Positions 31,534-58,509 of a stretch of DNA of 64,000 nt are shown here, one piece after another (the stretch's first letter is position 1; each line of letters starts with the position of its first letter). This DNA comes from Octopus sinensis. Taxonomy: Eukaryota. Location of the stretch: positions 84,134,001 to 84,198,000 of the forward strand of contig NC_043002.1 of assembly GCF_006345805.1 (NCBI RefSeq). Reading direction: 5' to 3'. The notes beneath the pieces are model-generated. The model was not told the origin of the DNA and searched no databases. It saw only the letters and a list, made by a program, of their open reading frames with translations. A program made the position numbers and the translations under genes.

Positions 31534-34500
31534 CTAAAAGGAAAAAAGAAGAAAATAATAAAATTGTTGATACACATAATCATAGAGATAGTTTATTTGT
31601 TTTAATATCTGTTTTTTTTTTTCATGCTATGACTTTGACAGAAATGGATTTGGGAGCAGGATTTAATGGCTGGATGCTCCTCTTGTCACAAACCCTCACC
31701 TGTTATTCAGGAGAAAGGGATTTTTATATTTCACAGGTATTTGAAAGTGTTGAGCCATCAGTCACAATGTCAACAAGACATCAACACTGTTTCATTCAAA
31801 CAGTAAAAATTGAAATATCAACATTCAGGAACATCCACATAGACACACACATACATGTGTGTATATAAATATACACACATAATTTTATGTCAGTTTTCCC
31901 ATGCTAGCATGGGTTAGACAGTCTTTCTGACATTATCTTCATGTTGCCAACACTCAGTACATGATGTACCTATTTTAAAAACAAGGATACATACAGTAAA
32001 TATAGCCATAAAGTATGTTTGTTGAAATTTGATCATAAGAGTAGCAAAAATGAAGATAGTAGCATCAATGTTACTAACAGCATGAACTGGATGCTTTTTT
32101 AAGTGGCACCAGCACTGGCAGGGTCACCAAGTAATTTGCAAGACAAGGAATCTTTGAGTGGGGAAGGGGCATTGGAGGAAGTAATCTTGTATCAGATGAT
32201 GGAAGGTTAGAATGTGACAGAGAGACAGAAACAAAGGTCTTGCAGTAGAGGAGGTGCATGGTTACCCAGCCAGAGAAAGAGAGAGATGCTAAACTCTATA
32301 GATATATTCTGTAGTATTGCATAGTTTAAAGACATTAAAACATCTTACTTCTCTTCTTTCATCATTCCAACAATCAGACACTTCTTGAAACGGCAGTGAT
32401 GACACAATACTCGACTGGTTTTGTTCACAATGCAGTGGTTGTTGTACTTGCACTTGTAACTCTCGCTGTGGTTGTTAGTAATACTGAACTGGAAGAAATT
32501 ACGGCAGCTACGGCAAACCCACAGCCCACAATAAATCTCACTGGACACATCTGAACAAACAATGCAAGGAACTTTTGGATTTTCCTTCACCACATTCTGT
32601 GGATTTTCATCTGAGTTGCTGTAACAAAGAAAGGATAAAATTGTATAAATAGAACATAACATTAATGTGAAAGATATTAAATATGTTTTCTTCCATCCCT
32701 GTTTTTTTTAAGCCCAGTGATGTAAGTTAAATGAGAAATAACTTATACAACTCATACGCATGCCCACACACACACTTTGGGTAAGTGCTTTCTGCTATAG
32801 CATGGGCAGACCAAAGCCTTGAGTGAATTTGGTAGACAGAAACGGAAAGAAGTCCATTGTGTGTGTGTATATCTAGGCATACCTAGAATAATGATGCACT
32901 TTTATCAAATTGACTACTCGCATGAGACATCCCTTTGTATTATAAAAGCGGACTTGTTTATTAATTGAATATTTTTGTTGCACAATCACTGAGATGGTTG
33001 TCATATTTGCTAAAAATACCAGCCACACAGGCCTAGGCCTTAAATCATGCTCCACCAAATTTTTTTTTGTTTTTGGCATAATTGTATGAAGTTCTGTGTG
33101 TAGAATATAAATTTGCAAAAATTTTCTGAAAACTTGAGACAAATAAAAAAGTTATGAAAGGGTTATATGTTGTGCATAATTCTACGCTTCCATATCAAAA
33201 TACAAGTGCTATTTCCAGGATGTTGACAAAATGGGCAGTCACGCACAAAATGACAGCTTTGAAATTGTGTTTCTTGACTGAGTCAAAATGATTAAACTTT
33301 AAACCTCTATAACTTATAAAAACATTTTTCTGGAAGGAGTTGAATCTGATGGGTCCCCTTCAAAAACAGGAAGATACAGAGATTTTTCGTCTCTCCTAAA
33401 GCATAAAATTTCCTACCAGATACTAACTCTTCATTGCCTGGCACACCAGCAGCATTTAATGGCAAACAATATGAATGGTAGACTGAATGATGCGTTACAG
33501 TTAGTTATCAAGACTGTGAACAAATTGAAGTCCAGTCCCTTGTCTGATTGAATTTTCCGTCAATTCTGTCTGAGAAATGATGAAGACTATACTAAACTCT
33601 TATACCATACCAAAGTGTGGTGGCTGTCAAAAGGAAACTGTGTTTTACGCTTTGTTCAACTGTTTCATATAATCATATATTTCTATGAAGATACTACACT
33701 ATCCACTTCATTGATGGGTGCAAGGCGCCATATCTTTTTTCTTTGTGATATATTCTCAAAATTAAATGATTCAAATATGTTATTGCAAGGAAACAGAAAA
33801 ACTCTCGTTGATTGTAAATTATTTACTACTACCTTCATTTCAAAATTGGTGCTGTATAAGATTAACATTCCAAAACATCAATTCCGTCAATTTCCACAAC
33901 TTGACTCTTTGAGAGATGAATTGGTTGATGAGGATTTAACTACATATCACAACTATATACAATCATTGCATGATGACATTTCAAGATATTGCGCTGAATA
34001 TTCCAAATTGGTAGAACAAACCATTTGAGGTCAATGCAGTCAATTGTTCAGGAGGGATTGATAGAATTACAAAATGACAATGATGCCACAATGCGATATC
34101 ACCGTAATGGCAAAGAAGGTTTGTGGTACCAATCTGTGGAAACATATGATATTACTTTTTCTTGCCTTCCTTACCTCATACCGGGTTGAATCTGGTTTTA
34201 GTCATTTGGAACTTTACTTTTCCATAAAAGAATTGAACTGGATGTGACACAACGAAGAGACTTGTGACTAATGTTGACAAGTTTGAAACTGAATGTATCT
34301 GCATTAGCTGCATCATACCAGACACTTTTTAAGAATACATTAAAAAGTTGTATTCGTTTCCTTTATAATACAATCATTAATTATTTTTGCATTGGTAATT
34401 CTGATCAATGGTTCATTTGGGGAAAATAGAAATCAGTGTAAAAGAAAGTGCAAGTTTACCGAAGTTAGTCTGTTTGCATAATATAAATTTAACATTAGAA

Positions 34501-37500
34501 TTTTATTCACACTAGCAGCAAAACTAAGCCCACAATGAGGGATTATTTGTAAACAACAGCATGTTTAGTCCAAACGGCACTAACCAAGCAATGAGTCTAC
34601 AATATAGTGTGTGTGTCAAATGATACAGGGGGGGGGTTCTCCTAGTGTTAGGGGTATGGTTGTATCAGAGTTTTTTTGACATAGGTGGGCAGTGGAGCAA
34701 TTTTGGACCAATAAGTGGGCAATATCGCAATTTGATGCGAAAAGTTTGGGAAACATTGCTTTAATGTCTATTTTCCATGCTGACACTGTCTGGGCCATTC
34801 AACCAGAGCTGGCAAGCAGGAGAGCTGCACTTGGTTCCAGTCTGACTTAGCTTGGTTTCTATGGCTAGATGTCTTTTCTAACACCAATCGCTTTACAGTG
34901 TGTGCTGGATGCTTTTAACGTGGCACTGGTATGAGTACTTTTACATGATGTCAACACGAGTGCTTTTTATGAGGCACTGGCACAGGGCTCTTGCAAGCCA
35001 TGAAAAGTGGATGTTAAAGCAATTAGGATGATGATAAAAGTAGCATAGAAATTTTGAATTATCAATGGAATGGACAAACAAAAAACTTACTTGGTTTTAG
35101 ATTTATTGGTGCTATTAGTCTTTGTCTGCTGCTTCTTTAACTCTGGCATTTCTTTAGACAAATTCTCATCTAGTTTGCGTCGTCTTCCTCGTTTGCTCAA
35201 TTCCTTTGACATGCCAACCCTCAAACACTTTTGGTAGCGACAATAGGAACAATTCACTTGCGCACTACCGTATACATTACAATTTTTCGGGGCACACTGA
35301 TAGTTTTTAAAACTTTGTTGCTCACAACTCTTGTAGAAGAAAACTCGGCAATTGTGACAGGTCCAAACCCCATAATGAATTCCAGATGCTTCATATCCAC
35401 AGACTTTGCAATGGTTCTGTAAAAAGTGATTAATGCCAAAAATATAATATTATTGAAAAAATTACAATTTCTTAGTTTATTAAGTGGTTACTTACAACTC
35501 AAACTTAGTTACATTCAATATCACCAAAGTATCCAGGCAAGAGTGTCCTTATAGCACTTAATACAATTCTTACTAATGTTACAATGAACAATCTCAGGTG
35601 ATCCTACTTGGAAATGTTATAAATGTTATACAGCAGGAGTGGCTGTGTGGTAAGTAGCTTGTTTACCAACCACATGGTTCCGGGTTCAGTCCCACTGCGT
35701 GGCACCTTGGGCAAGTGTCTTCTGCTATAGCCTCGGGCTGACCGAGATTTGGTAGATGGAAACTGAAAGAAGCCTGTCGTATATATGTGTATATATGTGT
35801 GTGCATGTATGTTTGTGTTTGTCCCCCTAGCATTGCTTGACAACCGATGCTGGTGTGTTTACGTCCCCGTTACTTAGCGGTTCAGCAAAAGAGACCGATA
35901 GAATAAGTACTGGGCTTACAAAGAATAAGTCCCGGGGTCGAGTTGCTCGACTAAAGGCGGTGCTCCAGCATGGCCGCAGTCAAATGACTGAAACAAGTAA
36001 GTAAAAAAAAAAAAAATATGAATAACAGAAATTGCAATGAAAAGGTTGTATTTTTTACCTCTAATTCCAATACACAGCACAAATATATAAGAGCTACAAT
36101 AGATAATCTCCCTCAAGCTTAGAGGCTCTTGAAGATAAAGCTTATCTAAATTTTCAAGGTGTTTAAACTGAGTGTATAAGATTGCACCCCTCTGAACTGG
36201 ACATCTGTCTGTTGTAGGGTTAATCCTCAGGTGCCACTGATACTCTTGCTCAGTTGAGTGCTCTGGAGCAATATGAAATGAAGAGCCTTGCTCAAGGATA
36301 CAGTGCACAGCCCAACCCAAGAACCAAACCTCAAACCTAAAGATCACGAGCCTAACATTGTAACAACTGGATCATGTACCTTTATGTCCAAATATATGCG
36401 AATAAAGAGAAAATATACATTACCCTCGTAATGGATTCAATCTGTACATTGCTAGCAGACTCAACCATCTTTTGGCTATCAGTCTTATCTTTTAAAGGCT
36501 GGACATTATGCTTTACAATATTTTTGGCCATTCCAAGAGCAAGACATTTTCGATACCGGCAATAATCACAGCTCTTTTTGTTGTTTTTCGTAATTGAACA
36601 GTTTTTGCTATCACAAGAATATTTCCGGTTGATACTGTTCTTTTGACTTCGTTTAAAGAAAGATCGACAAGGAAAACATGTGAGTACACCTGCATGTACA
36701 GTAGAGGCCTCATCACCACACACTTTACAGAGTATGTTGCCACTATGCCGAGTGAATCCAAGAGACAGGTTGTCCAGGTCACTAGAAATATATAAAAAAA
36801 TAGTCAAGTATATTAAACATAGTAATACAAAAATCTTTTCAACAACAATCAAAATTAGGCATTATAATTAAAAGCATTGCATTTTTATTAACATCTTCAT
36901 GTTGGCTCACAGCTGTATAGTTATCTGTTTTTTTATAATTAGTTTTCATTTTCACCATTTTGTTATTTTAGATTGTGTCTAACTACCCCTAACTCCCAGG
37001 ATATATTTAAGCTATTTGTACCATTTATTTTCTCTCTCTCTCTCTCTTTTCTTTTGAAAGTAGTGGTTTTCTGATTGCAGCCCTCTCATGAAATCTGGCT
37101 TTGTGCAGCTCCCAGCAAACAGTTTTTGTGGAAACTGGGTTCTCGAGGTGGTCATTAAGTTCTGCAGTAATTTTGGGAGCTGTACTTTTGTGATCCTTTC
37201 TAACAAATTGCGTAGAAGTCCAACTGTCCCTATCTGAAAGTTTTGGTTTTCTTTCAGAGTTTTGTTTCGATGAGGAGGTTTTTCTCTCTTTCTCAAAACT
37301 GTCATTTCTTTCGAGACCTCTTCCACACACACATGCTCTCTTATACACATGCACGTGCACCTTCGTTTTGGGATCACCACTACTTTATTAACACCCCTTC
37401 TTCTTAATTCTCCTGTGTGACCTCTCTGGCATTCGCCATGATAGATCGCTAGTTACTACACATTCTTTAATTTCTCTCCTTGTCTCTGTGTTCCATTCTA

Positions 37501-37628: not shown

Positions 37629-37660
<32 letters not shown>

Positions 37661-40600
37661 ATAATATTAGGGAGTATATCCAAACTTACAGGGAAATATA
37701 TATGTAGGTTTAGGTAGATATGTATATGTTTTCTGCTGGTAACTTTATGTGTGTGTGTGGGTATATACATGTGTATGTATGTATATGTGTATGTATATCT
37801 ATGTGTGTGTGTGTGTATGTATGGATGTATACATATGTATGTATTATGTGTATATATAGGGATGTAGACAGTGATATGCAACCCCATTACAAAACCAATA
37901 AATTGATTGATTGATTGATTATTTAATCAATCAATGGACCTAAATTTTTGAATATATTATATATTTTTTATAATTTAGACCTCAATAAACTAGAGTTGCC
38001 TCCCTTCATTCTTTTTATAAAACCACACATCTTAAATATAACATTGAAAGTAATTAAATGAATAGACGGATAAATATTTTAAAGGACTGAGTAAATGATG
38101 GTTATATTAATTAAGTGACTTAACACTATTACATAGAGTCTTGCATTTGAGGCATTTTGCCAGATAAAAATAGAATTTAAACATAATTTCAGGGATAAAT
38201 AGCAACAATTTAGTAATATGTAGGTATATATATATAAAAGAGAATATATAAGGATATATATTGAGTTGATTAATTAAAAGAGAATATATATTAAGTTGGT
38301 TCATTAATTTACTAACTAAATACTGTTGCAATTAATGCACTCTATCGGAGAATACATTTTAAACATAATTTTAGTGATAAACAACAAATTAGTGAAATAA
38401 CTTATATGGTCACTTTTGTTATTTTGTCCCTTATTTGAATTTGGTCCAAATAACTTCCAACATACATTTTTAACCATATATCACCCATATGATTTAATAA
38501 ATATATAAATGATGTCCCTACAGAATTCATGTTTTTCATCCAAATGATTTTGAAGACTGCGGAATAAATGATAATCTGGTGGGGTAATATCTGAAGAATA
38601 TAGTGGGTGGAGCATCGCTTCCCATTCAAACTACTCTAGCCTTAGTCTGGCATCCCATTCAATGAGGAGCCTTATACTCCCAGTCTTAGAAATTATAAGT
38701 TTTAAACAAAAGACAAGATTCATCCCAAACAGGTATGAAAATATTTAAGATGTTAGAAGACTATTACTTACCCATCAGACACAAGACTTTTATTCTGATT
38801 TGAAATTGGTTGGGTATTGTTTCCACTGTTGCTGTTCTTAGAATTTTGATTAACAGCATCTTGATTAGGAGTTGATAACAGTGACTGTGGCACTTCTGCT
38901 TGATCACTTGACTTTTCTTTCTGATGACGTAGTTTACGCTTAACCTTGTAGGACATACCAACACCCACGCATTTCTGGAACCAGCAGTAATAACAGCGAC
39001 TACGACTGGTACGACTGATTAAACAATCCTTGTTGAGGCATTTATATGCACGATGTAGTCTTTTGTCCAAACTGCGTCGGAAAAAGACACTGCAGTTCAA
39101 ACAAGATGCAATGCCATAATGAGAAACAAACGAGACATCCCCACAGACTTTACATAACTTAGCAACATCCTTGCTTAGATTAGTAGTCACTGATGGTGAT
39201 TCATTTGTTGTGTTCCTCATGTTGGAACTTAGGTCTTTGGTCTGAGATACTGTAGGACAAGTGGAACCCGATTTGCTTGATGTAACAGGCAGCATTTGTA
39301 CTTCTGAAGATGTGGTCATAGATAATCCTGAAAGCTTGTTAATAATCTCTGAATTATTACTAGGAGTTGGTATAGGATTAGTTTTGTCACAAACGTTGGA
39401 ACTGTTGGCATTGCAATCCTGTTCAGGTGCTGAGAGTCTGTTTGTAGCCATTAATGTTTGCTGCTTTTTCATTTGTAGAGTATCACTCATCCCAACAGAA
39501 AGACATTTTTGGTACCAGCAGAATCGACACCGGTTGGTAGTAGCTTTATTAATAAAACAGTTACCGTCTGCATGATCCTTTTCAGTAGGTATTCTCCCAT
39601 TTAGTACAGTTCGAAAGAAACACAAACAATTACGACATGTCTGTACTCCATACCGAACACCAATTGCAGTATCATCACAAACACTGCATATCAGTTCAGA
39701 ATGAGTTTGTGTCTGTCCCTGAGGTAAGGTAGGCTTAGGAGCAACTAACACAGATTTTACAGGTGAAGTGTGAAGTCTACTTTGAACAGCATCTACAGTG
39801 TTTGTAGGTTGTTTATTATTTGATAACTGTGGCTGCAAAGAAACTGTATTAGGTGTGCTGGTAGTATTAGTGTTTGCATTGGTCTGTAATGGTGTTGTGG
39901 TAATTACTGATACAGTTTGACTTCTAGGATTAAATGTACTAACTGTGCTGACTTCTCTTTCAACAGGAGAAACACTGCAAGCAACATCTGTAGTTGTACA
40001 AGTTGCACCAGAAACTATGCTGTTTGTGCTACTGATGGAAGTTGCTACAGATGCAAGGGATGTGCTTGCTACTTTACTTCTTTCAGCATTTGAAGAATCT
40101 GCAACAGTAGGCAATAGCTTACCACTCTTTACCTGGTGGATTCCTGAAGAGACAGATCGGTCAGTATTTGAAGTATAGCTCTCCAAGAATTGACCAGTTC
40201 CACTTTGGCTTTGATTTGTGGGAATTAACATTTTTGACATGCCAACAAGCAAGCACTTTTGAAACCAACAATAAGAACAACGTTCGTAGTTATCAGGTGT
40301 GACACAACAGTTTTTGTTATGGCACTTATATTTTTTGGTCGTTCGTGAGTCAGTACTCTGCTTAAAGAAAATAGTACATGACCAGCAGGTTTCTATGCCA
40401 AAGTGAATTCCTGATGCCAAGTCACCGCATACTTTACAGAAACATTCTTGACTGCTAGTAGAGTTTGGATTCTGGGAATTACCGACATCACTTTTGTTGT
40501 TATCACTCTGGTGTGGAACACTTTCAATAATTAAAGGTGAATCAGAATCATTATCAACAGCCATTGGTTCGGTTTCAGTGAGATTAGCTGTCCCAGTGCT

Positions 40601-43600
40601 ATTTAAATTACTATCTAAATCAATGCAAACAATAGATGATTGCTCACTGACTATCTTCTCTGTACTTGTCTCACGTAGCATCTTCTCTTGAGAAACGGAA
40701 GATCTGTTAGTGACTTTTTCTAAGTTCATTTCATTAGATTCTTCATCAACTGATATTCCAGTCTGTGTTGAACTGGAAGGCTTTGCTTTCAGATTTACTT
40801 CATCATCATCATTGTTTTCATCATTGTTCCCTTCTTTAATAACATCAGATGATATATCAATGCTATCAACTTGATCATCTTCAGTATTGGTGTCATTGTC
40901 AGTCATGACTGGATCACTATTGTTCACAGTGCTTTCATTATTTTGAATTGACTCTTTATGAAGTGCTGAAACTGCTGCTTCTGAACTTGTCTCAATCTGA
41001 TCTTCAGGAATAGAAACCTCATTTTCACTAGTCAAATCCTTCTGTTTGCTAACAGTTTCAGTTTCATTAGTTTGGGGTCTAAGTTTTGGTGGCCGTCCTC
41101 GTTTAGTGGTGCCTTTCATCATTCCTGCCTGTAGACACTTCTGTAGCCAACAATATCGACAGAATCGGCGTGTTACACTGTTGATTATGCATGACTTATT
41201 ACATACTTCATATTTACAGCCAATTTTGGAGTCAGTGCTTTGTGCAAAGAAACTACGGCAGCTTGAACATGAAATAATACCATAATGTAATCCATGAGAC
41301 ACATCTCCACAAACACTACACAAGCTAGTCCCAATGAAAATAGTATCAGTTTTGTTTCCAACTCTGCTTTCAGTCATGCTACTATCTTCTTTATTTCTGA
41401 CTTTATTTCTCTCGCTGAATTCTGCGACTATAGTAACAGAAGGGACAGACGAAATTTCAGTGGTGCTCTCTGACACAGTAGATGGTTGTTTACTGTTTTC
41501 TTTACAGATAGAATCTTGCTTACAGGTTGGTGTAACTTCAGTGCTAAGTAGTGTTGATTTTATCTTTCGTGGACGGCCTCGTTTACGCAGTGGCTTGGCT
41601 TGTGCTGTTTCCAAATCTACATCCTTATTTCTTAGGGGGATTTTCAAAGTAGTTTTGGTAAGAGTAGAAATAGACTTTGAAGTATTGTTCTGGGGATGAC
41701 GATTTTGTTTATGCATAGAAGTTGATGTCAAATTCTTTTTCAATGAAGTCTTTGAATTTACTTTTTGCTTGGCCATTTTCTTAGACAATTTCACAGTACT
41801 ATATGTTTTCTGTGATTTAGGCAAAGAATGTCGTAAACGACCATCATCATCATCATCATTAAGATTATCATCAACAAACTCATATTCTTTCAGTGCAGCT
41901 TGATGTGATGAGCTAGGAAGTGCACTTTTTGAAAGTGAAGGCTTTTTCTTAGCCTTCCCAATCATTTGAACTGACTTTTTGATTCGACTATGCATTTGAT
42001 TTGCAATATGTTTTGGAGAACAACATTTAATCATATAACGTAAAGAAAGAGATGGTACACCAACAGCTCTGCTTGTCTTCTTCTTTGACATATGAGCTGT
42101 TCTTTTCAGCAAAGTGAAAGATGTTTTCTCAGTTAGAGCTCGTGACCTGTGAGAAATATTTGGGTTGGTTGTCATCCTGGTGTAGTCAGTTCCAGCTTCT
42201 TTAGGATGGTTACTATCTGAAACAGAATCTTCATTATCAGAATTTCCAGCAAATTCAGAACTGGTCTCAGAAGGGTCTGGCACTACTATAGGATTAAGAG
42301 ACTGTTTATCGATGAAATGAGACAGTGCTCCAGGAATGATTTCTTTGCCAACAGGAGCCTCAGGTGAACAACAGTTGGAGTTTTGGATCATATCAACCAA
42401 AACTGAAGAATTTACAGAATTTCTTGAAGAACTTGGAATAATTTCTGTAATAACAGATTTATCAGTAAAATTTCGCAATGTCTCTAGAATAGTATTGTCC
42501 ACATTTTCCTCAGAATGTATTGCTCCAGTTGAATCAATAATTTCTACAGGTGTCACTCTATCAGCACTGCTTTCACCATCATCAACAGAATCACCAGACT
42601 TCTTTTGAACAATTTCAGTGTCTACAGAATTCCATAAAGGTTCAGGAATAACTTCAGTAACTACAGAGGGATCCACTGATGTACTAAGGCTTTCAGGTAA
42701 GATTCTCCGGAATGTTGGTGCTTCTTGTAATCCCAAACCCTGGTCAGACTCTGGCAAAGAAGTTTTTGCATTTGCAACTGGAATTTCAGTTGTGATATCA
42801 TTTGATGCCACTAGAGGAATGCTTTCAGAATTTGAATTCAAAGTAGTGCTTTTATCCATGTTGCTGACATACAGAAGAGAACCATCACTTTGGTCTTTTC
42901 TCTCCATTGTTACAGTAACATCTTCATTACATAAACTAGTATCCATGGCAGTGGACATAGATGAGTTATTGGAATCACAGCTAGGTTTTTGAGAAGGAAA
43001 CGACTCACTGATATCAACAGAGCATCCAGAATCACTAATTTGATTGTTATTATCTACAAATTCTGTATTTGAAGATTCTGGGGCCAAAGAAGATGTTGTG
43101 GTTGTTGGTTCACCTGAAGATGGCTGCGAAATTTTCAAATCCAAAAATGCTCTTGAACAGTTTTTATTACTTTTGGACACTGACTTGAAATCAGGAACAT
43201 CACAAACCTCCACATTTCCAATCTCTTCATGTATTTCTTCACTCATTTCATCAGTAAGGTCTTTAGCTAAAGGACTTTTATCATTAGGGAATACATTCTG
43301 AATAATTCCCATTTCATTTTCATTAATATGATGGTGATCACTATTGTCGTGGAACTTTTCATTTCTGTTTTGATCCTGTTGACCAGTTTTGGGAGTAGGT
43401 GTTGGTGATTGAACTGGAACGATTCGTTTCTCTTGCTTTGACATTCCAACAGCCAAACATTTTTGGTACCAGCAATATCTACAAACACCTCTATTTATTT
43501 TGTCAACATAACAGTTGCCATCTCGGCAGACATACTGACTGGAAATTTGCTTGTCTAAACTCTGGCGGAAGAAGACACTACATTTCAGACATGTCCACAC

Positions 43601-46600
43601 TCCATAGAGGACTCCTGGAGCTCTGTCTCCACATACTCTACATAACTTCTCAGAATCTGTTTCTTCAGAATGAGTAGCAGTTACAACAGAGCTACCATCC
43701 TCAATCATAGCAAAATCATTTGTTTCTGACTGTTTCTGTTTGACAAAATCAATATTTGAAGATTCCAATACAAGCTGTGGTTCAGGTTCTAGTTGTGGCA
43801 TTTTAGCATCCAAAGACAATGCATTTGAAGATTCCAGAGACTTATCACAAATTTTGACTCCTCGCTTCCTTTCTTTCTGAAGACTAAGAAGTTTTTTCCG
43901 TTCTTTCTCAATGCTTCTCTGGAGCATTAGAAGCTTCTCTTCCACATTATCTTTCTTCATTTGAAGCTCATTTAATTTTTGCTGAGCAGTTTCCCGCTCT
44001 CCATGCTCAAAATTACATCTGTCCATATCAGAGACTTTTTCTGACACATCCTGATCTTCACTTCGATCTAGGATTGGTTTGAAAACCACTTTTTTCACCT
44101 GTTTTTCTCCAGCTGCTGATGACACAAATGGCAGAGATTCAGAAACTGGTGTCATATCATCTGAGCTGTCGAAAATGTTCTGTGGAACTTCATTAGTTAC
44201 TTTTACCATCAAATGATCATTCATCGAAATTGAAGTAAAACTGTCTTTCACAGAATTGTTACGTTTTTCATTAGACTTTGTTTCCCAATCCAAACTAAAA
44301 AGCGATGGATCACGATTTTGATTTGAGTGCTCGGAGATGGAATCAATTCTGGTATTTTTAGAAGTCAAACAGGAGGGTAGAACATTACTGGTTTCATTGG
44401 TTTGTTTCAGATGACTGTCTTTTAGTAATAAACCACTTTCCTTTGTTTGATAATCATTACTGTTAAGGAGTACACGCCTAGTAGCTTTTGACGTACAGTC
44501 TTTCATTGTATCAGGTAACATCACAGACTGCTGCTGTTGCTGGTTTTGTTTCTTTAAAGCACTAACACGTTCTTTTTCCATTTTTAGACGTTCAAATTTC
44601 TTCTGGATCAATTCTATTTCTTCAGATGATTTAGTTAGAGATTCAAACATACTTTCCATCAAACTTGGTAGTTCACAAATTTGGTTGTCTGAAGTATTGT
44701 CCCCAAAGTATGGTTCAAGAACTTCACTGTCCATGTGAGATGGACTTGTTTTATCTTGAAGTATATTGTCCAAAACAGCACTGTATATGTCCACTGATTC
44801 TCTGAAAACTAGATTATCCAAAACAGGATCAGGAATTCGATTTTTTGATGCCTGGGTCTCCAAACTGGACGAATTTCTCAAAACATTTGTTTCTTTACTG
44901 AGCAAACCACATTCTACACACTTCTCATACCAACAATAGCTGCACCGATTTTTTGGCAGCAAATCACTATTGATAATAGAACAGCTTTGAGTCTGCTCAC
45001 ATACATACTTAGAGCATATTTTTGAATCAGCATTTTCTTTGCAGAAGGCCTTACAATCAGTACAAACTTTAGCACCACAATAGATCTCAGCAAAAGGTGC
45101 ACTACAGACAATGCACAATTCTTCGTTTTGAATGAGTGGAGTTATCACTGAAGAATATAGTGTATTTCCAGGATTTTTAACTTGATCCAAAGAGCTAACC
45201 ATGTGTACAGATGTTGTATTTGTGCTTGTAGAGTTACTGATGGCAGTTGTTAATTGTGCAGATGATATTGGTGTTAGAGGTAAGGAAAATGTAAAACGAT
45301 CACAGGTTGGCGTCAAGGCAAAAGTAAAACGGTCACAAGTCGGGGTCATTTTTGATATTTGGTCAGCCTGCATTCCAACAGCAAGGCATTTCTTGTACCA
45401 ACAAAATTCACAGTTTTCCCGGTTTGTTTTTGTAACCGAGCAATTTCGTCGTTTTGAACAGCTGAAACCAGCAGCAAAACCATCTTGTATGCACATCTGG
45501 AAAAAGATGCGGCAATCTGGACAAGTAAGCACTCCGTAATTAACAACAGAAGCCTGATCACCACACACAGTACAGATGTTCATATTTTGTGTAAAATGAG
45601 AAGGATCGATAAAAGTCTTGGTGGTGTTGTTAGTAGTAGTAGTAGTAGTAGAAGTAACAGTAGTAGTAGTAGTTCTACATGTACTGCTCTCAGTAGATTT
45701 CAACAAGTCCTCGTGCTTACATTTGTCAGATGTGGCACCTGAATCAGTCAATTTGGTACTATTCACTGCATTTACATCAGGTGCTTTATCGCAGGAGCCG
45801 ATAGCTGTTGAAATAGTAGATTTCTTCAGTCTGCTGCTGTTACTGTTTAAACCAGTATTACTACTACTATTACTAATGTTACCGTTATCATTTCTGCTAG
45901 GAATACTGACGTTGGTATTTTTTGCAAAATCTTCTTTTGGTGCTACAACTCTTTCATGAGTTGGTAATTTACACATTTTGTAATGTGATTCAGCACCAGA
46001 AGCAATCTTGATGCCATCTTTGTTACTGTCTGTGACTTTCTTTTTAGGTAGCACCACAATTTTCTTTGCCACTGTTTTTTGATGAACTTTTGCTGTCATA
46101 GTAGTGGGTGCTGAAAATGTGACTGTTGTTGATGCTGCAGTTCTCTTTAAAACTGATGGCAATGTCACAGCATTGGTCGGTTTCTGTGATACAAAAGTTG
46201 ATGACGACGACGACGATGATGATGATGACGGCAATGATGATAAAGTCGATGATGATGATAGAATTGATGATGGTGATGAGGAGGAGGATAAAACAGATGA
46301 TGATGACAATGATGGTGAGGTTAATGATGATGATGATGACTGTGATGATAATGATAATGAACGAGAAAATGAAACAGAAAGAGATTGGAATGAAGTAGTT
46401 GATGATGAGACAGAAGTATTACTGGTACTCCTTTTTGAAGATGAGTTAAGTTGTGTATTTGAAGAGTTACCAGTATTCTGTGTGCTACTTGCAGAATGAC
46501 TTACCACTTTGAAACGTTTGTTAGGGATGCTGTTAATGTCGCTCTGATGTTCAGAAGGTTTGGCTAGGTTTTGATCTATAGTTTCGAGTTTTCTTTTTTT

Positions 46601-49600
46601 CACAGTAATCACATTAGTTTTTGATGCTGTTGAAGAGACACATCTACCGCTGCTACTGTTGTTGTTATCGTTTAGAGATTTATTACCAATATTGTTGTTG
46701 CTACTGTTTAGAAGTTTGCTACTAACATTGTTGTTGTTCTTGTTGCTACCGATGACCTTCACACAGTCTTTGCTATCTTTGATACACTTTTTGTTATTGT
46801 TTGCTGTTACAGATCCTTCGCTTTCTTTCTGCTCATCTTTTACTTTAATGCCATAAACAAGTTTTACCGTTTTTTGTGTTGATGAAACAACTTTGCAGCT
46901 GTCATTATCTTCCATTGGATTTCCCTCTTTCTCTTTCTGCATACCGCTAAGCAGACACTTTTCATACCAACAATACTCACAGCTACTTCGCCGAAAACGA
47001 TTAATCTTGCATTTTTTAAACTTGCAAAAATAGCCCTTGTAAAAATCATCAAGAATACTCATTTTAAAGAAAACTTCACATTCTGGACAGGCCAAAATGC
47101 CATAATGTTTCTTGAAAGCACGATCTCCACAAACTTTACATAAGTTGAGATCTTTTTTAGGTGGTGGTACTTTCTGAGACTCTGTAGTTTGTTGTGGGAC
47201 TGTGGCCTTGCATGTCTCTTTATTTATATGTTTATGCAGTGATGGCATTTTCGATAATGAGTTGGTTGCTTTTTCAGTTTTCATTTGCTGTTGTTGTTTG
47301 TTCTCTACTTTTATCACAGTAACAGTTTCACCAATTTCTGGTTTATCACTTGTCATTCCAGCTCTGCAACATTTCTGGTACCAACAGTACTCACACTTTC
47401 CTCGGTTTCTCTTGGTAATTTCATGCCCTTTATGTTTGCAGTGGTAACCATCAGCAAAGCTGTCTTGTATGCTCAGTCGATAGAAAAGCACACAGTCTGG
47501 GCAAGTGAGTACTCCATAATGGATAGTAGAAGCTGTATCTCCACATACTTGACACACACATTCCTCGGTAGTCAGGACAATGCCAGGATGTTTCTCGGGA
47601 TGTGTTTTCCTGCAACATAAATAGAAATGAATTAAGTAAAAATTAACTGAATGCCAACATTGAAATAATACAGATAGACACATCCTCATCATCCGTTTAG
47701 CATTTACTTTTTTAAGCTTGCATAGGTTGGACAGAGTTTATTGAGGAAGATTTTCTATAGTAAGATGCTCTTCTTGTCACCAACTCTCAGCTGTTTCCAA
47801 GCAAGGCAATATTTCCTCATAGCCACACATGTTCTCATAGAATATTGGAAGTGAATACCACTGCTTGTATGACAGTGGCAGTCATTTACAACTATCACAT
47901 ACACATAAATATACATACATACATATATACACACACACATCTATATATATACATATATATATACACATACACACACATCTATATATATATATACACATAC
48001 ATAGACACACACACACACACATATATATATATACATATACTACACACATATGCAATGGGCTTCTTTTACTTTTCTCTCTCACAAGGGCTTTGGTCATCCT
48101 GAGGCTATAACAGAAGACACTTGTCCGAGGTACCACACAGTGGGACTGAACCCAGAGCCATATGGTCAGGAAGCAAACTTTTTACCACACACAAATATAT
48201 CTGTTTACTATATGTACTAGTGCAATTACTAGAGTCACTGGCTTAGCCTTTCATGACCAAAGATAGCTATCAATAGGTTGCTAGCCTAATTAACATTTTT
48301 GTAACGAAGAAATAATGGTAGTAATAAGCATCTCTCTCTCTCTCGCAAGAAATGCAGTAAAGCAACTATAATTTGAGATCAAAGTTTCAATGGCAGACTA
48401 GGTTACTTTGTAAGTCTCTCACTCACTCACTCTCAATCCTACTATATGACACTTTAGGCAAATGTTTTAAATCATATTCTCAAGTTAGCCAATATCTTTT
48501 AAGTGGGAATTGATAAGTGGAAACTGAGCAGAAGCCCATTATATATGTAGAAGAGGATTATACTTATTGGTAAAATCAAGCAGGAAGTCTGAATCAGACT
48601 GGAGTTTGGTGCAGCCTTCCAGGTTGCCAGTCCTGGTCAAACCATCCAACCCATGCCAGCATGGACAACAGATGATGATGATAATGATGGCTAGAAATGT
48701 GTCAAAAAAGTACCTTAAGCAGTCAGTAAATGCATAAAAATAAAATAAGCACCAGATTATTATAAACATTCAGATCGTTGTCAGCGTCACCTCACAGGTA
48801 CTTGTGCCGGTGACACATGAACAAAACAGCCGAGCGGAGTCGTTGCCAGTGCTGCTGGACTGACTCTTGTGCAGGTGGCATGTAAAAAACACCATTTTCG
48901 AGCGTGGCCACTGCCAGTACTGCCAGACTGGCCCTCATTCTGGTGGCACTTTAAAAGCACCCACTACACTCTCGGAGTGGTTGGCATTAGGAAGGGCATC
49001 CAGCTGTAGAAACTCTACCAGATCAGATTGGAGCCTGGTGCAGCCATCTGGTTCGCCAGTCCTCAGTCAAATCGTCCAACCCATGCTAGCATGGAAAGTG
49101 GACGTTAAACGATGATGATGATGATGATGATATGGGGAGTACTGCAGCATAGCTATGCTCCAAGGACTAAAACCAATCAAAGTATAAAAGAATATATTTA
49201 CAACTACTTTCCTGTAGTAACATGCACTGAATAGGTTCATTTTAAAACAGCCAGTTTCTACTCAGTCTTTCATCGTTTCTGTGTGAGGCACAGCATTCTG
49301 AGATCAGTTCTCACCATGTCTTCCTTCCTCTCCTGTGGACTCCTTCCACCAGCACTTGTTTGACACTTTTTCACCCAACATGCATTCTTCATATGCATCA
49401 CTCATCTGTACTATCAGTGAGGTCCACACCTCTAATGCTGAACTTTTATAGCTCAGCACAGCTCGTGTCATATCATTCGTCCATACCAATATCACACATC
49501 TAGCTATCAAAGATATAATATATATATCATCATCATCGTTTAACATCCATTTTCCATGCTGGCATGGGTTGGACGGTTCAACCGGGGTCTGGGAAGCCAG

Positions 49601-52600: not shown

Positions 52601-55600
52601 AAAAATGTGTGAGAAAGGAAACGGTTGAGAGAAGAAAGGTGTGGAGATTGAAGGAAGAAGAAACAAGAGCAAGGTTTGAAGAGAGAGTTAGGGAGCTGGT
52701 AAGCATTGATGCACTGGATTTGTGGAAATCTTTTAAGGAAGGGGTACTGAAGACATGTGACAAAGTGTGTGGAAGGACAAAAAGTAGGAGAGATCGGTGA
52801 GATATGTGGTGGTGGAATGAGGAAGTGAGGGATGCGATAGCAAGGAAGGAGGTGCACAAAGCTTTATGTAATAATAGGACTGAGCAAATGAAAGCCAAGT
52901 ATAATAACATGAAGAAGCGTGCAAAGAGGGTGGTTGTGAGATCTATGAGGAAGGAGGCTGAGGAGAAGTTGAGCAGGCTGGATGAGAACCCAGATAGAGT
53001 GTGTAGGTTTATGAAATCAATGAAAAAAGATGGAAGAGATGTTAAAGGAGGAAGGTTCTCCTTGAAGATGAAAGGAAGCGTTTATCGGAGTTGTGTGAAA
53101 TCTGCAATGCTGTATGGGAGTGGGACATGGTGTCTGAGGGAAAGCAAAATGGCAATTTTGTGAAGGACCAAGAGAGCAATGTGTGGTGTGAAACTACTGG
53201 ACAGAAGGAGGGCTGAGGACTTGATGGAGATGCTGGGATTTGGAGGAATTGGTGGAACAGCTGGCAAGGGCGAATGGAATGCAGTGGTATGGACATGCAT
53301 TGAGGAGGGATAAGGATCATGTTCTGAAGAGCGTGCTTGAGTTTAAAGTGAATGAACTGCGAACGCAAGGTCGACCAAAGGAAACATTGAGGGAACAGAT
53401 GGAGGAGATTGAGAGGAATGACTTGAAGAGGGAGGATGACCAAAACCAGGTGAGATGGCATGATGGTGTGAGAGCGGTTGCAGTAGGAGTGAGGTAGATC
53501 CAACCACCCACATTAACAGGGACAGACCTGGATTTAAAATATTGGAATTCATCATCATCAACATCAGTGTGCCACACAAATGGGAATGATATAGAAACTA
53601 TGTAAGATGGAAACTTAACCAAACAGCCATGCCTGTGCTTCTTAAGTGTATGGGTCCCATTTTATTGTTAAGATGTGTATATAACCTTAACAAAATATGT
53701 TAATGTTGAAGTGTGTATGTGCAGCATATGTTGAGGTGGTGCAAGCAGTATTTCATTAATGAGTATACACAAGCTGCAGACATTTTACAGTTGAGATTTG
53801 CATGCAGGGCATTTTAATGTTAAGGTGTTTCATTTGTTCAATGAGTGTTTTTCCATGCAAGCATGGGTTGAGCAGGGGCTTATTTGAGACAGAGTTTTAT
53901 GGCCAGATGCTCTTCCCGGTCACCAAACCATACCTGTTTTTCTCAAGTAAGAGAATTCTTGATTTCTCCTCATCTTCAAAAGTGTAGAGTGACTGGTTTA
54001 TGATGTCAACAAGGAATGTAAACATCATATCACCATTTCACTCAGACAGTAACAAGTGACATCATAGAATGTCACTATTCATGTGCATATGCACACATAC
54101 ACACACATATACAAGAAGCTGTCATCAATTTCCATCTATCAAATTTACTGAAAACGCATAGGTGGCACAGAACTATGGTAGACAACAGTTGCCCAAGATG
54201 CTATGTAGTGGGACTGAACCTGAAACCACACAACCTATTGCTGAGATATTTGCATGCTGTATTGTAGACATGTACACATGTGGCACTTTAGATTTAGGTC
54301 TAATGCTATGACATCTGTTTGCAATTTAAGAATAATTTAAAAAGTTAGTATCACCTAGCAGATTAGAGACCATTTTCAGCTAAAATTATTTAATGCTGGT
54401 GGTACAAGAAAAAGCACTCAGTACAAGTGAATGGCATTAGGAAGGGTACCTGGCTATAGAAACCATGTCAAAGCAGACACTGGAGCATGATGCAGTCCTT
54501 GGACCCATTGGATCCTGTTAAACTGTCTAACACATACCAGCATGGAACATGGACATTAAGTGGCGGTGATGGAAGTCAGAAAAATTGTTTAGTTTTATTT
54601 CAGAAATGAAAGGGAGAAAATGAATTGATGTTTTGATAACTCTCTCCAAATCATGTCCCAATATAATTTTGTTTAGCATTTTTATAGATGCATGGCACAA
54701 AGTATCAGATCAAATTGTGCTGTGCTTTCAGTTTGGTGCTACACTGTAGGTCACCTGCACTTTTTGATTGTGTGATAGATTAAACAGCTTGCATCCAATG
54801 ATGTGGTGACTGCAACTTACTTATGCATGTAGTTACTGCAGCTAAAACGAAGTAAACTTAAATGATAAAAACAGCTCCAAATTTGCCTGATTTATCATAA
54901 AAATTTGATAATCTAGCTTATAAAAGGTAGGGCTGAGAGAGAGAGAGAGGGGGGGGAGAGGAGAGAGAGAGAAAATGGATGTTTTCTTTTCCTTTTAGTG
55001 ACTTTAATAACTAAGAAACTACTTCAAGAATTTTTTGGTAAATCATATCAAATCTAACATCTATTTCATCCTGGCATTATTTTATTCACCAGCCTCGTCT
55101 GGCCTCCATGCCAGTGGCACGTAAAAAGCACCATCCGATTGTGGCCGTTGCCAGCCTCATCTGGCACCTGTGCCGGTGGCACATAAAAAGCACCCACTAC
55201 ACTCACGGAGTGGTTGGCGTTAGGAAGGGCATCCAACTGTAGAAACACTACCAGATCAGACTGGGCCTGGTGCAGCCTTCTGGCTTCCCAGACCCCAGTT
55301 GAACCGTCCAACCCATGCTAGCATGGAAAGCGGACGTTAAACGATGATGATGAATCAAATAGATAAGCTACATTTTGAGGAGCATAGAACAATACACTAA
55401 TTTACACAAATGCACACACATATATCATCATCATTTAACATCTGTCTTCCATGCTGGCTGGGTTGGACAGTGTGACAGAAGCTGGCAAGCAACACCAGGC
55501 TCCACTGTCTGCTTTGACATGGTTTCTATGGCTGGATGCCCTTCCTAATGCCAACCATAAATAATAGGTACAGGCATGCCTGTGAGGATGCAGAGTTTGC

Positions 55601-58509
55601 TTTATTATTATTATTATCATGTAGTTTTGGGTTTTATCCCACTGTTTAGCACCTTCGGAAAATGTCTTCTACTGTACCTTTAGGTCAACCAATGTTGTGA
55701 GTAGAACTAGTAAACAGAAACTGTATGAGAGCTCATCATATATACATCATTCTTGTTATCATCGTCATCATCATTTTTATGTCTACTTTTCCATGCTTGC
55801 ATAGGTCAGATAAGACTTTGCTGAAACAGAATTTTGCCAGACCAAATGCATTTCCTCCCCTATTCTAATCAACAACTAACAATCTGGACATGAATTTGTT
55901 AAGGACTACAAACTAATGACACCGTTTGTATGAAATAATGACATCTGTGTCCAGTACTCACATGTCAAGACATGCCAGTACGATGAGACACGCTTTAGTA
56001 GTGGACTGTAAACAAAGAACAGCTGACATCACTGAATTGCAAATCCGATTAATTAGTTTAAATGTTATAAGTTCACAACCATGAAGTCTCAAGTTCAAAC
56101 TCACAGCAGAGCATTTTGGGAAGCTTTTTTTTTTGCCATAGCGTCGGGCTAACCCAAGCCTTGTGAGTAAGAGTGGGTATTCAAGAACAGAGCAGAAGAC
56201 CATTAGATTGATCGTTCCTGTAATTACATTGAGGATACACGGATCTGTAGAATACTCAGCCACTTACATGCTAAATCAAGGCGCTGGTAGTTCAATTGAT
56301 TGAACAACTAGATACGTATCATTGAAATCAACGGTGATCCAGTGTTTTACATGCTAATAGCAACTACAACTTAATATAACTATGACTGAATGCTCAAGTC
56401 AGGTTTAACTAAATGAACTTCAATGTAGATCTCTGCTGAGGCCTTTGAATAAGCATGTACTTCTTATTGTTCAACCATGAAGCTACCCTGACCTGGCAGG
56501 CCTATGATCAAAAACACATCTGTCGTACAATCTTATCGTTTCAGAGAATATGTAGGACCTATATTGTCTAAAGTGTCACGGTATGGTGTGATTTGAAAAG
56601 GGATTCACTCGATGACACTTTGATATTATAGATGCTATTATAGGATCGTTATAGTAGAGAATATTGTTGTTTAATACTAGGTCATCTCCGACAACACAGA
56701 CCTATGATTAAAGACATTCTAGCTGTGGCATCCCACATATTTTATATATGAAAGACTACATTGTCTAAGTGTATTCTTTAAGACGGTAGAGTGTGATTTG
56801 CGGGAGATCTAACTGCTATTTCTAGCGAGCCCTATGTGTGTGTGTATGTATATATATATCATTTAGTTGTAAACTTAAAACGAGTATCCTATTAATGTGA
56901 AATAGAAATTTGGGGAATGTTGGGTGTAATAAATCTGAGTGCTATCCGTGGGAAAAGAAGGAGAAAATAAGCACCTTTGAGTACCATAACTCATGGTGGC
57001 AATATATGTGTGTATGTATTAGTGAAATTAAAATCAGTTTTTGATATATGATGAAATTAAATGGTCAAAGCATCCTTTAATTTCCTCAGTAATGCAAGTA
57101 AGTATATTTTGGCCTTAGTTGTTACTTAATCCCGGATCATTGCAGAAAAATAGATTTGTGGTTAAAAAGTAATCCAGTCGAGACTATCTCATCTTTTTGG
57201 AGATGTATAGCAATACATTTTCTAACATACTATATCCCTATTTATGACGGTAGCATGTGGAAACTTGGCTGCTAATTCGAATAGGCCGAACGACCACGTT
57301 GTCTTGTTGTCTAGGCAATATTTCTCTCATTAGTTTACTGCTATAATTGTTGTAATAAAGGAATTTTGGGTGTGTACATATGTCTGCGTGTCTGTATATG
57401 TATGTATGCGGGTGTTTAAAGAGGGATGCAGAGTAAAAATTACATTTAAAGGCTTACTTTTGTGATTCCTTTGAGGAAACAGGATTATTGGTAATCTCTC
57501 TCGTAACCGAACTTTTCGTCTGATTGGAAACAGACGTTTTTGTTTGAGGTTGAACTGCGGTAGTTTTTGTTATCCCTTGAGTTCGAGCGATTGGTTTTAA
57601 TTGTTTCACTGATTTCTGTTGTTGATTAAAAACTTTTAACGACTTCCCTTGTGCGAGTTGCAAAGAGGCTACTCCGGATGATACTGTAGACACCGACGGC
57701 CCATTTCCTTGGATTGAGCTTTTAGTAGTGTGAGAATTATCCATTTGAGTCGATCCTGCGAGTTGCTTTTGCATTGTAGATAGTTTCGGTTTTGATTGAG
57801 AGATAGCCGTTTTCTCGGAAGAGTCTGAACGAACGGGCTGATATTGCTGGCGTTGTGTCTGTTTATTCTTGGTTGCCACATCTACACTTGAACTTTCATT
57901 TGACGAGGCAGATAAATTTGGATTCTTGGATTCCTTTTCTGACGAACATGAATCGTTTTTGTTCCGAATTATATCATCACTGGGATCTTTGTTGTTATTG
58001 TTGGTATTCGGAGGTCTGTCTTTCTGATGTTTAGATTGGTTAACATCCGCGATTTCCAAAGCTTCATTGAGTCCAAAAGAGATGCATTTGAGATACCAAC
58101 AAGCACGGCATTTATTTACAATATCTGTTTTGATAACACATAATCCAGAAACTGGTGATTTCGAAGTCAACAAATTGGAATTCCTCAATGATATACGTCT
58201 GTTAATCTGACTCTGAGTAATACAGACATAAGTTAAGTGTGCATCTCCTAAGGTACTATGCTGGTAAAAATTCCTACATGCGGAACAAAAACTTTTTGTC
58301 TGAATCTTAACATCTGTAGGTCTATTTATGTTATTTGTCGACTTACTGTCAATATACTGCTCCGCCGCCTGTGCCCCACACACAAAACACGGGGCTGTTG
58401 CTGCCGTGGCGGCCAAAACTCCATCATCATCATCTTTTTTTAGCCCATCCTTCCGATTAAAATCCTGTGTTGTGGTTCTTTTGTGTTTCTGCGGGGACTT
58501 AAAGTCCAT
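31093..58509 (-). CDS. Spliced gene model: giant protein (>=3,761 aa) with 14 nuclear-receptor-type C4 zinc-finger DBDs, no LBD seen; 3' end unresolved
   Basis: Six exons joined by hand, each with a GT donor, AG acceptor and matching phase (2,2,0,2,2). Each exon carries one or more C-X2-C-X13-C-X2-C...C-X3-5-C-X9-C-X2-C-X4-C...GM motifs (loops expanded in DBD1 and DBD5). Confidence 0.85.
32349..32618 (-). CDS. Coding exon 5, DBD13 (32363-32566)
   Basis: Acceptor cctttctttgttacag|C, donor GAGAA|GTAAGA, both phase 2. [25 protein letters not shown]...CKYNNHC...[14 protein letters not shown]. Confidence 0.88.
33427..34758 (+). mobile_element. hAT (Charlie/Buster-type) transposon remnant in intron 4
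   Basis: [10 protein letters not shown]...[19 protein letters not shown] transposase motifs with stops. Charlie-like 3' TIR AAAAGTTTGGGAAACATTG ends at 34758. Confidence 0.8.
35091..35416 (-). CDS. Coding exon 4, DBD12 (35210-35410); this reading frame is absent from the ORF track
   Basis: Hand translation: [82 protein letters not shown]. Acceptor atcactttttacag|AAC (phase 0), donor ACCAA|GTAAGT (phase 2). Confidence 0.88.
36424..36781 (-). CDS. Coding exon 3, DBD11 (36529-36729)
   Basis: Acceptor tttttatatatttctag|T (phase 2), donor ACGAGG|GTAATG (phase 0). [28 protein letters not shown]...CDSKNC...[14 protein letters not shown]. Confidence 0.88.
37040..37300 (-). mobile_element. Tc1-like transposase N-terminal remnant (intron 2)
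   Basis: RKPKLSDRD...[29 protein letters not shown]...[19 protein letters not shown]. Confidence 0.8.
38480..38660 (-). mobile_element. mariner transposase C-terminal remnant
   Basis: [28 protein letters not shown] resembles the mariner WEVLPHPPYSPDLAPSDYHLF motif; in-frame stop upstream. Confidence 0.75.
38772..47609 (-). CDS. Giant coding exon 2 (8,838 bp, 2,946 codons) with nine NR-type DBDs (DBD2-10)
   Basis: Lies within the 2,974-aa ORF. Acceptor ctatttatgttgcag|G, donor GATGG|GTAAGT. DBDs at 47354-47554, 46940-47140, 45371-45574, 44903-45115, 43442-43642, 41120-41320, 40238-40438, 39488-39688, 38954-39154. Confidence 0.93.
50570..50955 (+). mobile_element. RTE-clade LINE reverse transcriptase fragment
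   Basis: [22 protein letters not shown]...LRKLG...[16 protein letters not shown]...[14 protein letters not shown], degraded. Confidence 0.85.
51600..53520 (+). mobile_element. Internally deleted RTE-clade LINE (AP endonuclease plus C-terminal region)
   Basis: VGSWNVGSL...VCCMQEARW endonuclease motif; [14 protein letters not shown]; [12 protein letters not shown]; WYGHALRR; GRPKETLR. Many frameshifts. Confidence 0.85.
57458..58509 (-). CDS. Coding exon 1 of multi-DBD gene (350 codons + 2 nt), contains DBD1 with two loop insertions
   Basis: ATG at 58509; the ORF-track start at 58512 is GTG and an in-frame TAG lies at 58542-58540. CFVC-X30-CSAC-X17-C-X27-C-X9-CRACWYLKC at 58069-58389. Donor CAAAA|GTAAGC, phase 2, matches the phase-2 acceptor at 47609. 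Confidence 0.8.

Follow-up and report, generated by a model that had tools for sequence, protein, structure and literature searches.

A cephalopod gene encoding fourteen tandem nuclear receptor DNA-binding domains joined in frame to a selenocysteine lyase

The stretch of DNA considered here, referred to below as the window, comprises 64,000 nt of Octopus sinensis contig NC_043002.1 (positions 84,134,001-84,198,000), and all coordinates are given as window positions. On its minus strand lies the gene LOC115213281, whose product XP_029638073.2 (P0003; 4182 aa) is labeled “uncharacterized protein LOC115213281” and carries the UniRef name selenocysteine lyase. It is one conserved cephalopod gene that encodes fourteen tandem nuclear receptor DNA-binding domains (DBDs), of which DBD1 is degenerate, DBD2-13 are intact and non-canonical, and DBD14 is canonical and RAR-like; the protein has no ligand-binding domain (LBD), and a lyase is fused to it.

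The domains were detected with a six-frame scan for the receptor zinc-finger pattern together with the Pfam profile zf-C4 (PF00105), membership being taken as modules of the form C-x2-C-x13-C-x2-C plus C-x5-C-x9-C-x2-C that score over the Pfam cut-off. On the minus strand, the pattern scan returned 12 full matches in the range 32.5-47.6 kb and a further one at 31.4 kb, and all the DBDs of the array fall on that strand within the single gene. Against the whole protein the profile scores 728 bits (E 9.5e-225) over 13 stretches, far in excess of chance, and the open stretch of exon 2 (2989 codons) alone holds nine matches worth 465 bits. DBD2-14 all belong to zf-C4, those scored singly (DBD11, 12, 13, and 14) reaching 68-97 bits, and DBD1 stays under the cut-off. 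Only the second finger of DBD1 matches the profile, its two fingers carry ∼20 and ∼23 extra residues, and because of these large insertions the module at 58389 was missed by the pattern scan.

An earlier note on this DNA had listed thirteen non-canonical P-boxes between 32363 and 58389, and each was recovered exactly, on the minus strand and in one gene. The ends of that interval also agree, DBD1 having its first Cys codon at 58389 and the Gly-Met (GM) motif of DBD13 its last codon at 32363. DBD14 was not on the list because it lies outside the interval, 885 bp beyond it, in the same gene and reading frame. The absence of an LBD, the lyase fusion, the canonical DBD14, and the losses outside the P-box are all additional to what the note contained.

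Spliced mapping of XP_029638073.2 back to the window gives an identical sequence in six array exons (E1-E6, Table 1), with every intron GT-AG and in frame, and database proteins of O. vulgaris and O. sinensis match the large open stretch at 99-100% identity. DBD2-10 share a single stop-free exon of 8838 nt, that is, 2946 codons. When the whole 2989-aa stretch was used as a homologue query, low-complexity words dominated and only its own protein cluster was matched, while a homologue search with an alignment of the 13 DBDs gave 37 candidates, none of them informative.

Table 1. Exons, DNA-binding domains, and basic motifs of the gene, in window positions, listed in the direction of the gene
Feature	Positions	Strand	Description
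Exon 1	57458..58509	-	start ATG at 58509; degenerate DBD1 inside; spliced mapping of XP_029638073.2
DBD1	58069-58389	-	P-box CSACRN; degenerate; 20.7 bits against the Pfam cut-off of 21.1
Exon 2	38772..47609	-	DBD2-DBD10; Ser/Thr/Asn-rich linkers of 71-707 aa
DBD2	47354..47554	-	P-box CPDCVL; Cys6 replaced by His, likewise in the third cephalopod; AlphaFold2 model at TM 0.85 to receptor DBDs
DBD3	46940..47140	-	P-box CPECEV, unchanged in the third cephalopod
DBD4	45371..45574	-	P-box CPDCRI
DBD5	44903..45115	-	P-box CTDCKA; most divergent; FC and GL motifs, 3-aa insertion, net charge 0
DBD6	43442..43642	-	P-box CLKCSV, unchanged in the third cephalopod; CVKCSV in Argonauta
AT-hook-like motif upstream of DBD7	41558..41590	-	kept in Argonauta and the third cephalopod
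DBD7	41120..41320	-	P-box CSSCRS, identical in Argonauta; finger 2 spacing C-x3-C
AT-hook-like motif, C-terminal extension of DBD7	41075..41107	-	kept in all three species
DBD8	40238..40438	-	P-box CWSCTI
DBD9	39488..39688	-	P-box CRNCLC; Cys5 replaced by His in all three species
DBD10	38954..39154	-	P-box CLNCSV, then FFRR; helix Arg retained
Exon 3	36424..36781	-	DBD11 inside; mapping and Pfam
DBD11	36529-36729	-	P-box CFPCRS, then FFKR
Exon 4	35091..35416	-	DBD12 inside; mapping and Pfam
DBD12	35210-35410	-	P-box CHNCRV; KRGRRRK after the domain
Exon 5	32349..32618	-	DBD13 inside; mapping and Pfam
DBD13	32363-32566	-	P-box CRSCRN
Exon 6	31093..31533	-	DBD14 inside; mapping and Pfam
DBD14	31284-31478	-	canonical P-box CEGCKG, then FFRR; net charge +11; Pfam 97 bits
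Alternative first coding exon of the lyase	13706..13782	-	MGSVLNIAAFDPDSRDVDDIIQNGK; ATG at 13782; inside the 30-kb intron after exon 6
First shared lyase exon	576..701	-	IIYLDYNASTPH..., in-frame join to exon 6 in gene models; remaining enzyme beyond the window

Beyond DBD14 the protein continues into an enzyme. Next to the 13 zf-C4 stretches, Pfam reports Aminotran_5 (PF00266, 152 bits) on the whole protein, and the enzyme part scores 414 bits against rat SCLY (3A9X), with the lysine that binds pyridoxal phosphate (PLP) and the catalytic cysteine both aligned (GHKFYGPRIG and SVGAACHS). Judged by its fold and catalytic residues, the C-terminal part is a selenocysteine lyase, intact and active-looking. 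The same junction is found in the Argonauta hians model GAB1611135.1 (P0007), where DBD11-14 are joined to the lyase. In addition, a contig of 2578 nt (L003, run SRR27666080) consists of one reading frame, open from its first base, that runs from the middle of DBD12 over DBD13 and DBD14 and through the whole lyase to a stop and a 3′ untranslated tail, and it is 63% identical to Octopus. This contig is free of introns while the corresponding genomic parts are separated by introns, one of them of 30 kb, and its source is therefore a spliced mRNA from another cephalopod. The fusion is real, the lyase being joined by splicing, in frame, to the DBD array.

No Pfam match to the LBD (PF00104) was found on the 4182-aa protein, and tblastn with 12 receptor C-termini found no LBD remnants in the window, the 30-kb intron included, or in the Argonauta locus. 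Inside that intron, the exon at 13706-13782 matches the N-terminus of an SCLY-only protein of O. bimaculoides (P0005). A similarity between the donor site of exon 6 and that of the lyase's own first exon (AAAAT/GTAAGTTG) scored 27, barely more than shuffled sequences with their average of 18 and maximum of 25, and was set aside. The same gene region offers a few further observations. The O. vulgaris model P0002 ends by read-through directly after the DBD12 exon (E4 donor 35091; ...NSTNKSKTK*), and an isoform with the array only, which would be devoid of DBD13, DBD14, and the lyase, may exist as in this model. Within intron 1, positions 52300-53700 of the plus strand are purine-rich (GC skew +0.49) and their translation, which has many stops, resembles a degraded retrotransposon coding region; in the long intron before the lyase exon, an open stretch at 6500-6808 on the minus strand resembles a fragment of a Tc1/mariner transposase (...VIFQHDRAPCH...).

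Turning to the domains themselves, the earlier note had stated that the zinc ligands and the FF/FY and GM motifs are retained, and this is mostly so, the departures being the His ligands of DBD2 (Cys6) and DBD9 (Cys5), the C-x3-C spacing of DBD7, and the FC and GL motifs of DBD5. Furthermore, nearly all DBDs of the array have a short D-box, C-x4-C. Two domains, DBD2 and DBD5, were modeled with AlphaFold2, with the paralogue alignment as input. The DBD2 model, that of the His variant, has a predicted local distance difference test (pLDDT) score of 88.7, a template modeling (TM) score of 0.79-0.88 to solved receptor DBDs, and a root-mean-square deviation of 0.9 Å to the best match, while that of DBD5, the most divergent module, reaches pLDDT 79.7 and TM 0.77-0.80; the support they give to the fold is weak, because the method knows the receptor DBD fold well. 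Both models match receptor DBDs and, along with the 13 Pfam matches and the 88-92% identity of core DBD columns between orthologues, they bear out the claim that the fold is kept while the recognition helix varies.

The array is present in other cephalopods. The Argonauta hians locus (L001) holds DBD5-14 in the same order, with DBD5-10 in one giant open exon, and an ENA contig (L002) of a third cephalopod holds DBD2-10 and an additional degenerate module. Aligned jointly, the domains cluster by array position and not by species, with one-to-one orthology for DBD2-13, and the species have their odd features in common: the His ligands that replace Cys6 in DBD2 and Cys5 in DBD9, a Trp in DBD1-10, and the four-residue D-box. 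The grouping by position and these shared oddities indicate that the array was built, with its modules already distinct, before the lineages split. The reading frame is free of stops over >2800 codons in each of three lineages, the gene is single-copy at each locus seen, and gain or loss of modules is rare, the extra module of L002 being the one case. In L002, a search of the 10 kb that precede the exon for an orthologue of DBD1 found none.

The loci differ in some details. The extra degenerate DBD of L002 (11155-11359) sits between DBD3 and DBD4 and has the P-box CNACYN, KW for KC, and GQ for GM. In the same contig, at ∼11736-11845, the frame changes within a poly-Ser run between DBD4 and DBD5, which is either an assembly error or a real shift. 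The linker between DBD9 and DBD10 measures 1002 aa in Argonauta (L001 5648-8654) against 111 in Octopus and 122 in L002, an in-frame expansion of ∼890 aa. In DBD8 and DBD10, Argonauta has diverged more from Octopus than the third species has, although the latter is the more distant one, and two Argonauta modules have turned acidic, which suggests, as far as these sequences go, that the array evolves faster in the Argonauta lineage.

The substitution rates separate the domains from what lies between them. Between Octopus and Argonauta, the nonsynonymous rate (dN) is 0.172 in the DBDs and 0.355 in the linkers, and its approximate ratio to the synonymous rate (dS) is ∼0.11 and ∼0.35, respectively, values that are rough because dS is saturated (1.0-1.5) for this pair; to the third species dS is not measurable. 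At shorter distance, O. sinensis and O. vulgaris differ at 1 of 849 DBD sites and 24 of 2674 linker sites (p = 0.017), and in a close Octopus relative (P0014) there is no change in DBD2 or DBD3, while 11 of the 107 sites of DBD1 have changed, a rate equal to that of the linkers. These figures of purifying selection mean that DBD2-13 are maintained and that DBD1 looks like a decaying module, so that decay, which the earlier note had set against diversification, applies to DBD1 and fails for the twelve others.

The P-box can be followed in the same manner. Among paralogues its four variable columns are nearly random, with 8-17% pairwise identity, and yet between orthologues they behave like the rest of the domain surface: identity is 58% for the P-box and 58% for the other non-core DBD columns between Octopus and Argonauta (Fisher p 1.0), 58% and 52% between Octopus and the third species (Fisher p 0.6), and 42% and 42% between Argonauta and the third species. 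In the deep comparison the 58% of the P-box stands against ∼33% in the linkers (binomial p = 0.0016). The P-box codons have a dN of 0.32-0.34, with linker dN at 0.36 (Argonauta) and 0.6-1.1 (third species), and with dS >1 their dN/dS is ∼0.2 and never above 1. By these comparisons, P-box positions are under moderate constraint, neither neutral, nor specially protected, nor accelerated. The neutral drift that the earlier note had offered as a counter-case is therefore not what the P-boxes display, and its example, diversification against transposable elements, is not supported as an ongoing process, as the rates fit an old diversification that was later preserved and not a continuing arms race.

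The residues with which receptors touch DNA tell more about what the modules may do. In receptor-DNA structures (ER, GR, RXR/RAR), the bases are contacted by the Glu and Lys of the P-box and by the Lys-Arg that follows FF, and among the residues that touch the backbone are the finger-1 His-Tyr and an Arg that comes after the last Cys pair. The canonical Glu at position 2 of the P-box occurs in none of DBD1-13, as had been claimed, the Glu of DBD3 (CPECEV) sitting at a non-canonical position, and Lys or Arg is found at position 5 in 6 of the 12 modules DBD2-13. The near-universal base-contacting Arg of the helix is gone in DBD2-9 and DBD13, is replaced by Lys in DBD12, and is kept only in DBD10 and DBD11; where it is gone, the replacing residue is the same between orthologues in seven of nine cases. 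A backbone-contacting Arg of the second helix is Trp (C-W-Y-Q-K-C) in DBD1-10, conserved across species. On the other hand, the His-Tyr motif of finger 1 is mostly retained in DBD2-13, as is, in most of them, the Arg before the last Cys pair. The net charge of the 67-residue core is +11 in DBD14 and 0 to +10 in DBD2-13, and it drops to -3 (DBD9) and -1 in two Argonauta modules. DBD14 has the Glu and Lys of the P-box and the FFRR arginines intact. From these residues, most of DBD2-13 are very unlikely to read a canonical half-site, and DBD14 is likely to read one.

Basic motifs accompany some of the domains. AT-hook-like sequences, defined here by a Gly-Arg-Pro core with Lys/Arg flanks, lie on both sides of DBD7 (KRGRPRK and KRGRPPK) and are conserved in Octopus, Argonauta, and L002, and basic GR-containing extensions follow DBD12 and DBD14. 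Together, these motifs and extensions suggest that the whole protein sits on nucleic acid.

As for the origin of the array, the best PDB matches of DBD14, at 105 bits, are to RAR alpha, beta, and gamma, and it shares 76% of its residues with a vertebrate RAR-alpha DBD, the FFRRSI.K.M.Y.C motif among them; it differs from RAR (NR1B) in that its D-box is one residue shorter, an LBD is absent, and it ends an array of 13 other DBDs and is followed by an enzyme. DBD2-13 are 32-54% identical to RAR, 25-56% identical among themselves, and 30-55% identical to the first DBDs of receptors with two DBDs (2DBD), which makes old internal duplication of an NR1-type DBD the best account of them. Descent from the first DBD of the 2DBD nuclear receptors was considered and is unsupported, with identities of 33-49% that do not exceed those to RAR or among the modules.

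These 2DBD receptors (NR7; Wu and LoVerde 2023, PMC10497141), known from bivalves and gastropods, have two DBDs, separated by 17-22 aa, and then an LBD, with a D-box of the form C-x5-C and the paired P-boxes CEACKK-CEGCKG, CLPCKS-CEGCKK, or CEACKS-CEGCKG, and the review of the group lists no cephalopod member (PMC10497141). The octopus protein resembles them in having more than one zf-C4 DBD in a polypeptide, in its canonical last DBD with an unusual P-box upstream, in its mollusc host, and in the 23 aa between DBD13 and DBD14, close to their spacing; unlike them, it has 14 DBDs and not two, linkers up to 707 aa, no LBD, a C-x4-C D-box, and a last pair, CRSCRN-CEGCKG, that matches no known P-box module. 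A receptor DBD devoid of an LBD is also found in NR0A proteins (knirps type), and P-box diversity with lineage-specific expansion in the supplementary receptors of nematodes (PMC10497141), though these are single-DBD proteins from separate genes, whereas the octopus diversity lies within one polypeptide. The polydactyl C2H2 proteins likewise string numerous small zinc modules, whose recognition helices differ, along a single chain, but their fold is another one, the octopus linkers are long and disordered instead of 7 aa, and no fast evolution of contact residues is seen here.

A profile search covering 1.84 billion representatives found protein models with 3-6 zf-C4 domains and unusual P-boxes, from Caenorhabditis brenneri, the mite Dinothrombium and the stick insect Bacillus rossius as well as from ENA/Logan contigs, several of them with LBD-like tails. 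They have far fewer domains than the octopus protein, are not orthologous to it, and have no lyase, and some may be merged tandem genes; no publication treating such 3-6-DBD proteins as a class was found in the literature. Among them, P0008, P0009, P0011, P0013, P0020, and P0116 (ENA, Logan, MetaClust) have 4-6 receptor DBDs with odd P-boxes, and several share an LBD-like tail (...WQFFAPQMDLEIRQI...), so that proteins of the P0008 type look like a separate, apparently undescribed family of multi-DBD receptors. A search of the literature for the octopus gene, for cephalopod receptors containing over two DBDs, and for a fusion of DBD and lyase found no description of any of them.

Of the ways in which these data can be read, that of an annotation artefact, in which separate receptor genes, or a receptor and a lyase gene, were wrongly merged, is scarcely credible. 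It could draw on the first exon that SCLY has of its own, with an ATG inside the 30-kb intron, on the SCLY-only proteins of O. bimaculoides, and on the O. vulgaris model P0002 that stops after DBD12, but nine DBDs lie within one exon, the intron-free L003 joins DBD12-13-14 to a complete lyase, and the in-frame junction is identical in Octopus, Argonauta, and L003. Hardly more can be said for the idea that the non-canonical domains are decaying, unused relics and that only DBD14 and the lyase matter. DBD1, below the Pfam cut-off and changing at the linker rate, fits such a picture, the extra degenerate module of L002 and the faster evolution of the Argonauta DBDs than of the Octopus ones are in line with it, and against it DBD2-13 keep their zinc ligands and core (88-92%) at a dN/dS of ∼0.11, in a frame open over more than 2800 codons in three lineages. 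A KRAB-zinc-finger-like arms race, in which the recognition helices diversify to follow transposable elements, would suit the polydactyl architecture with a different helix in each module, the repeat-rich octopus genomes, and the relics of such elements in the introns; it is nonetheless very improbable, given that the P-box evolves no faster than other surface positions with dN/dS well below 1 (three lineages, saturated dS), that the modules are one-to-one orthologous across lineages at saturated dS, and that the gene is single-copy at each locus with rare module gain or loss.

A more serious competitor, possible even if on the doubtful side, takes DBD1-13 off the DNA altogether: they would be zinc-stabilised modules for RNA or protein, for instance a scaffold that brings partners to the lyase, and DBD14 alone would bind DNA. 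In its favor are the replaced base-contact residues (Glu absent, Lys/Arg at position 5 in 6/12, the helix Arg only in DBD10/11), the Trp that takes the place of a backbone Arg in DBD1-10 of all species, the low net charge, and the D-box shortened to C-x4-C in nearly all DBDs, to which can be added that steroid-receptor DBDs can bind RNA hairpins. It is opposed by the finger-1 His-Tyr backbone motif and the Arg before the last Cys pair, kept in most modules, by the AT-hook-like motifs and basic extensions that adjoin DBD7 and DBD12, and by the positive net charge that most domains still have.

The interpretation that we prefer, and to which we give about an even chance on the strength of the sequences, is an old and fixed array for multivalent binding of nucleic acid or chromatin, with DBD14 and the AT-hooks as anchor and the lyase perhaps dimerising it. 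DBD14, its basic C-terminal extension, and the AT-hook-like motifs would tether the protein to DNA, with AGGTCA-type half-sites as the probable target. DBD2-13 would be unable to read the canonical hexamer, because most of them have lost the helix Arg and DBD1-10 have Trp for the backbone Arg, and each of them would instead make one fixed contact of its own, either with a non-canonical DNA site or with some other nucleic acid. Their diversification would have been a single event of long ago, by internal duplication of an NR1/RAR-like DBD, now maintained and no longer in progress. Two arrays may be paired by the lyase, which is a homodimer in its solved structures. Several points weigh against this interpretation. 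DBD2-13 are much less basic than DBD14 (0 to +10 vs +11, with Argonauta DBD9 at -3) and most have lost the Arg by which every solved receptor-DNA complex reads guanine, so that some or all of them may not bind double-stranded DNA. Moreover, the AlphaFold2 models, being of a well-known fold, say little on function, the comparisons rest on three or four lineages with dN/dS values made rough by the saturated dS, and the transcript evidence spans the part from DBD12 to the lyase out of a predicted full-length mRNA of 12.5 kb.

A bolder proposal concerns the enzyme. Bacterial regulators of the MocR/GabR type consist of a winged helix and a fold-type-I PLP domain; they are dimeric, and the latter domain is usually not an active enzyme. 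By analogy, the octopus protein has a DNA-binding part joined to a PLP fold-type-I domain where an effector-sensing domain would sit, although the DNA-binding domain of the bacterial proteins is a winged helix and the octopus protein keeps the catalytic Lys and Cys. It is conceivable, if improbable, that in cephalopods the LBD of a RAR-like receptor was replaced by a PLP enzyme, and that the lyase dimerises the protein and couples the state of its substrate (selenocysteine, selenium supply) or of its cofactor to the DNA or RNA binding of the 14-module array. If this were true, the protein would be a eukaryotic counterpart of MocR/GabR and a novel design for a metabolite-sensing “receptor”, in which 12 re-written modules would give a long composite target.

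In the textbook view, a nuclear receptor has one DBD and one LBD. The only described exception with extra DBDs has two of them, and the octopus protein has 14. Since the databases name it “selenocysteine lyase” or “uncharacterized”, surveys of cephalopod receptors and surveys of lyases will both misread this gene. The in-frame lyase fusion, present in a spliced transcript and previously unreported, ties a family of DNA-binding proteins to selenium metabolism, and the 12 intact receptor DBDs with re-written surfaces constitute a natural experiment on what this fold can recognize beyond the hexamer half-site.

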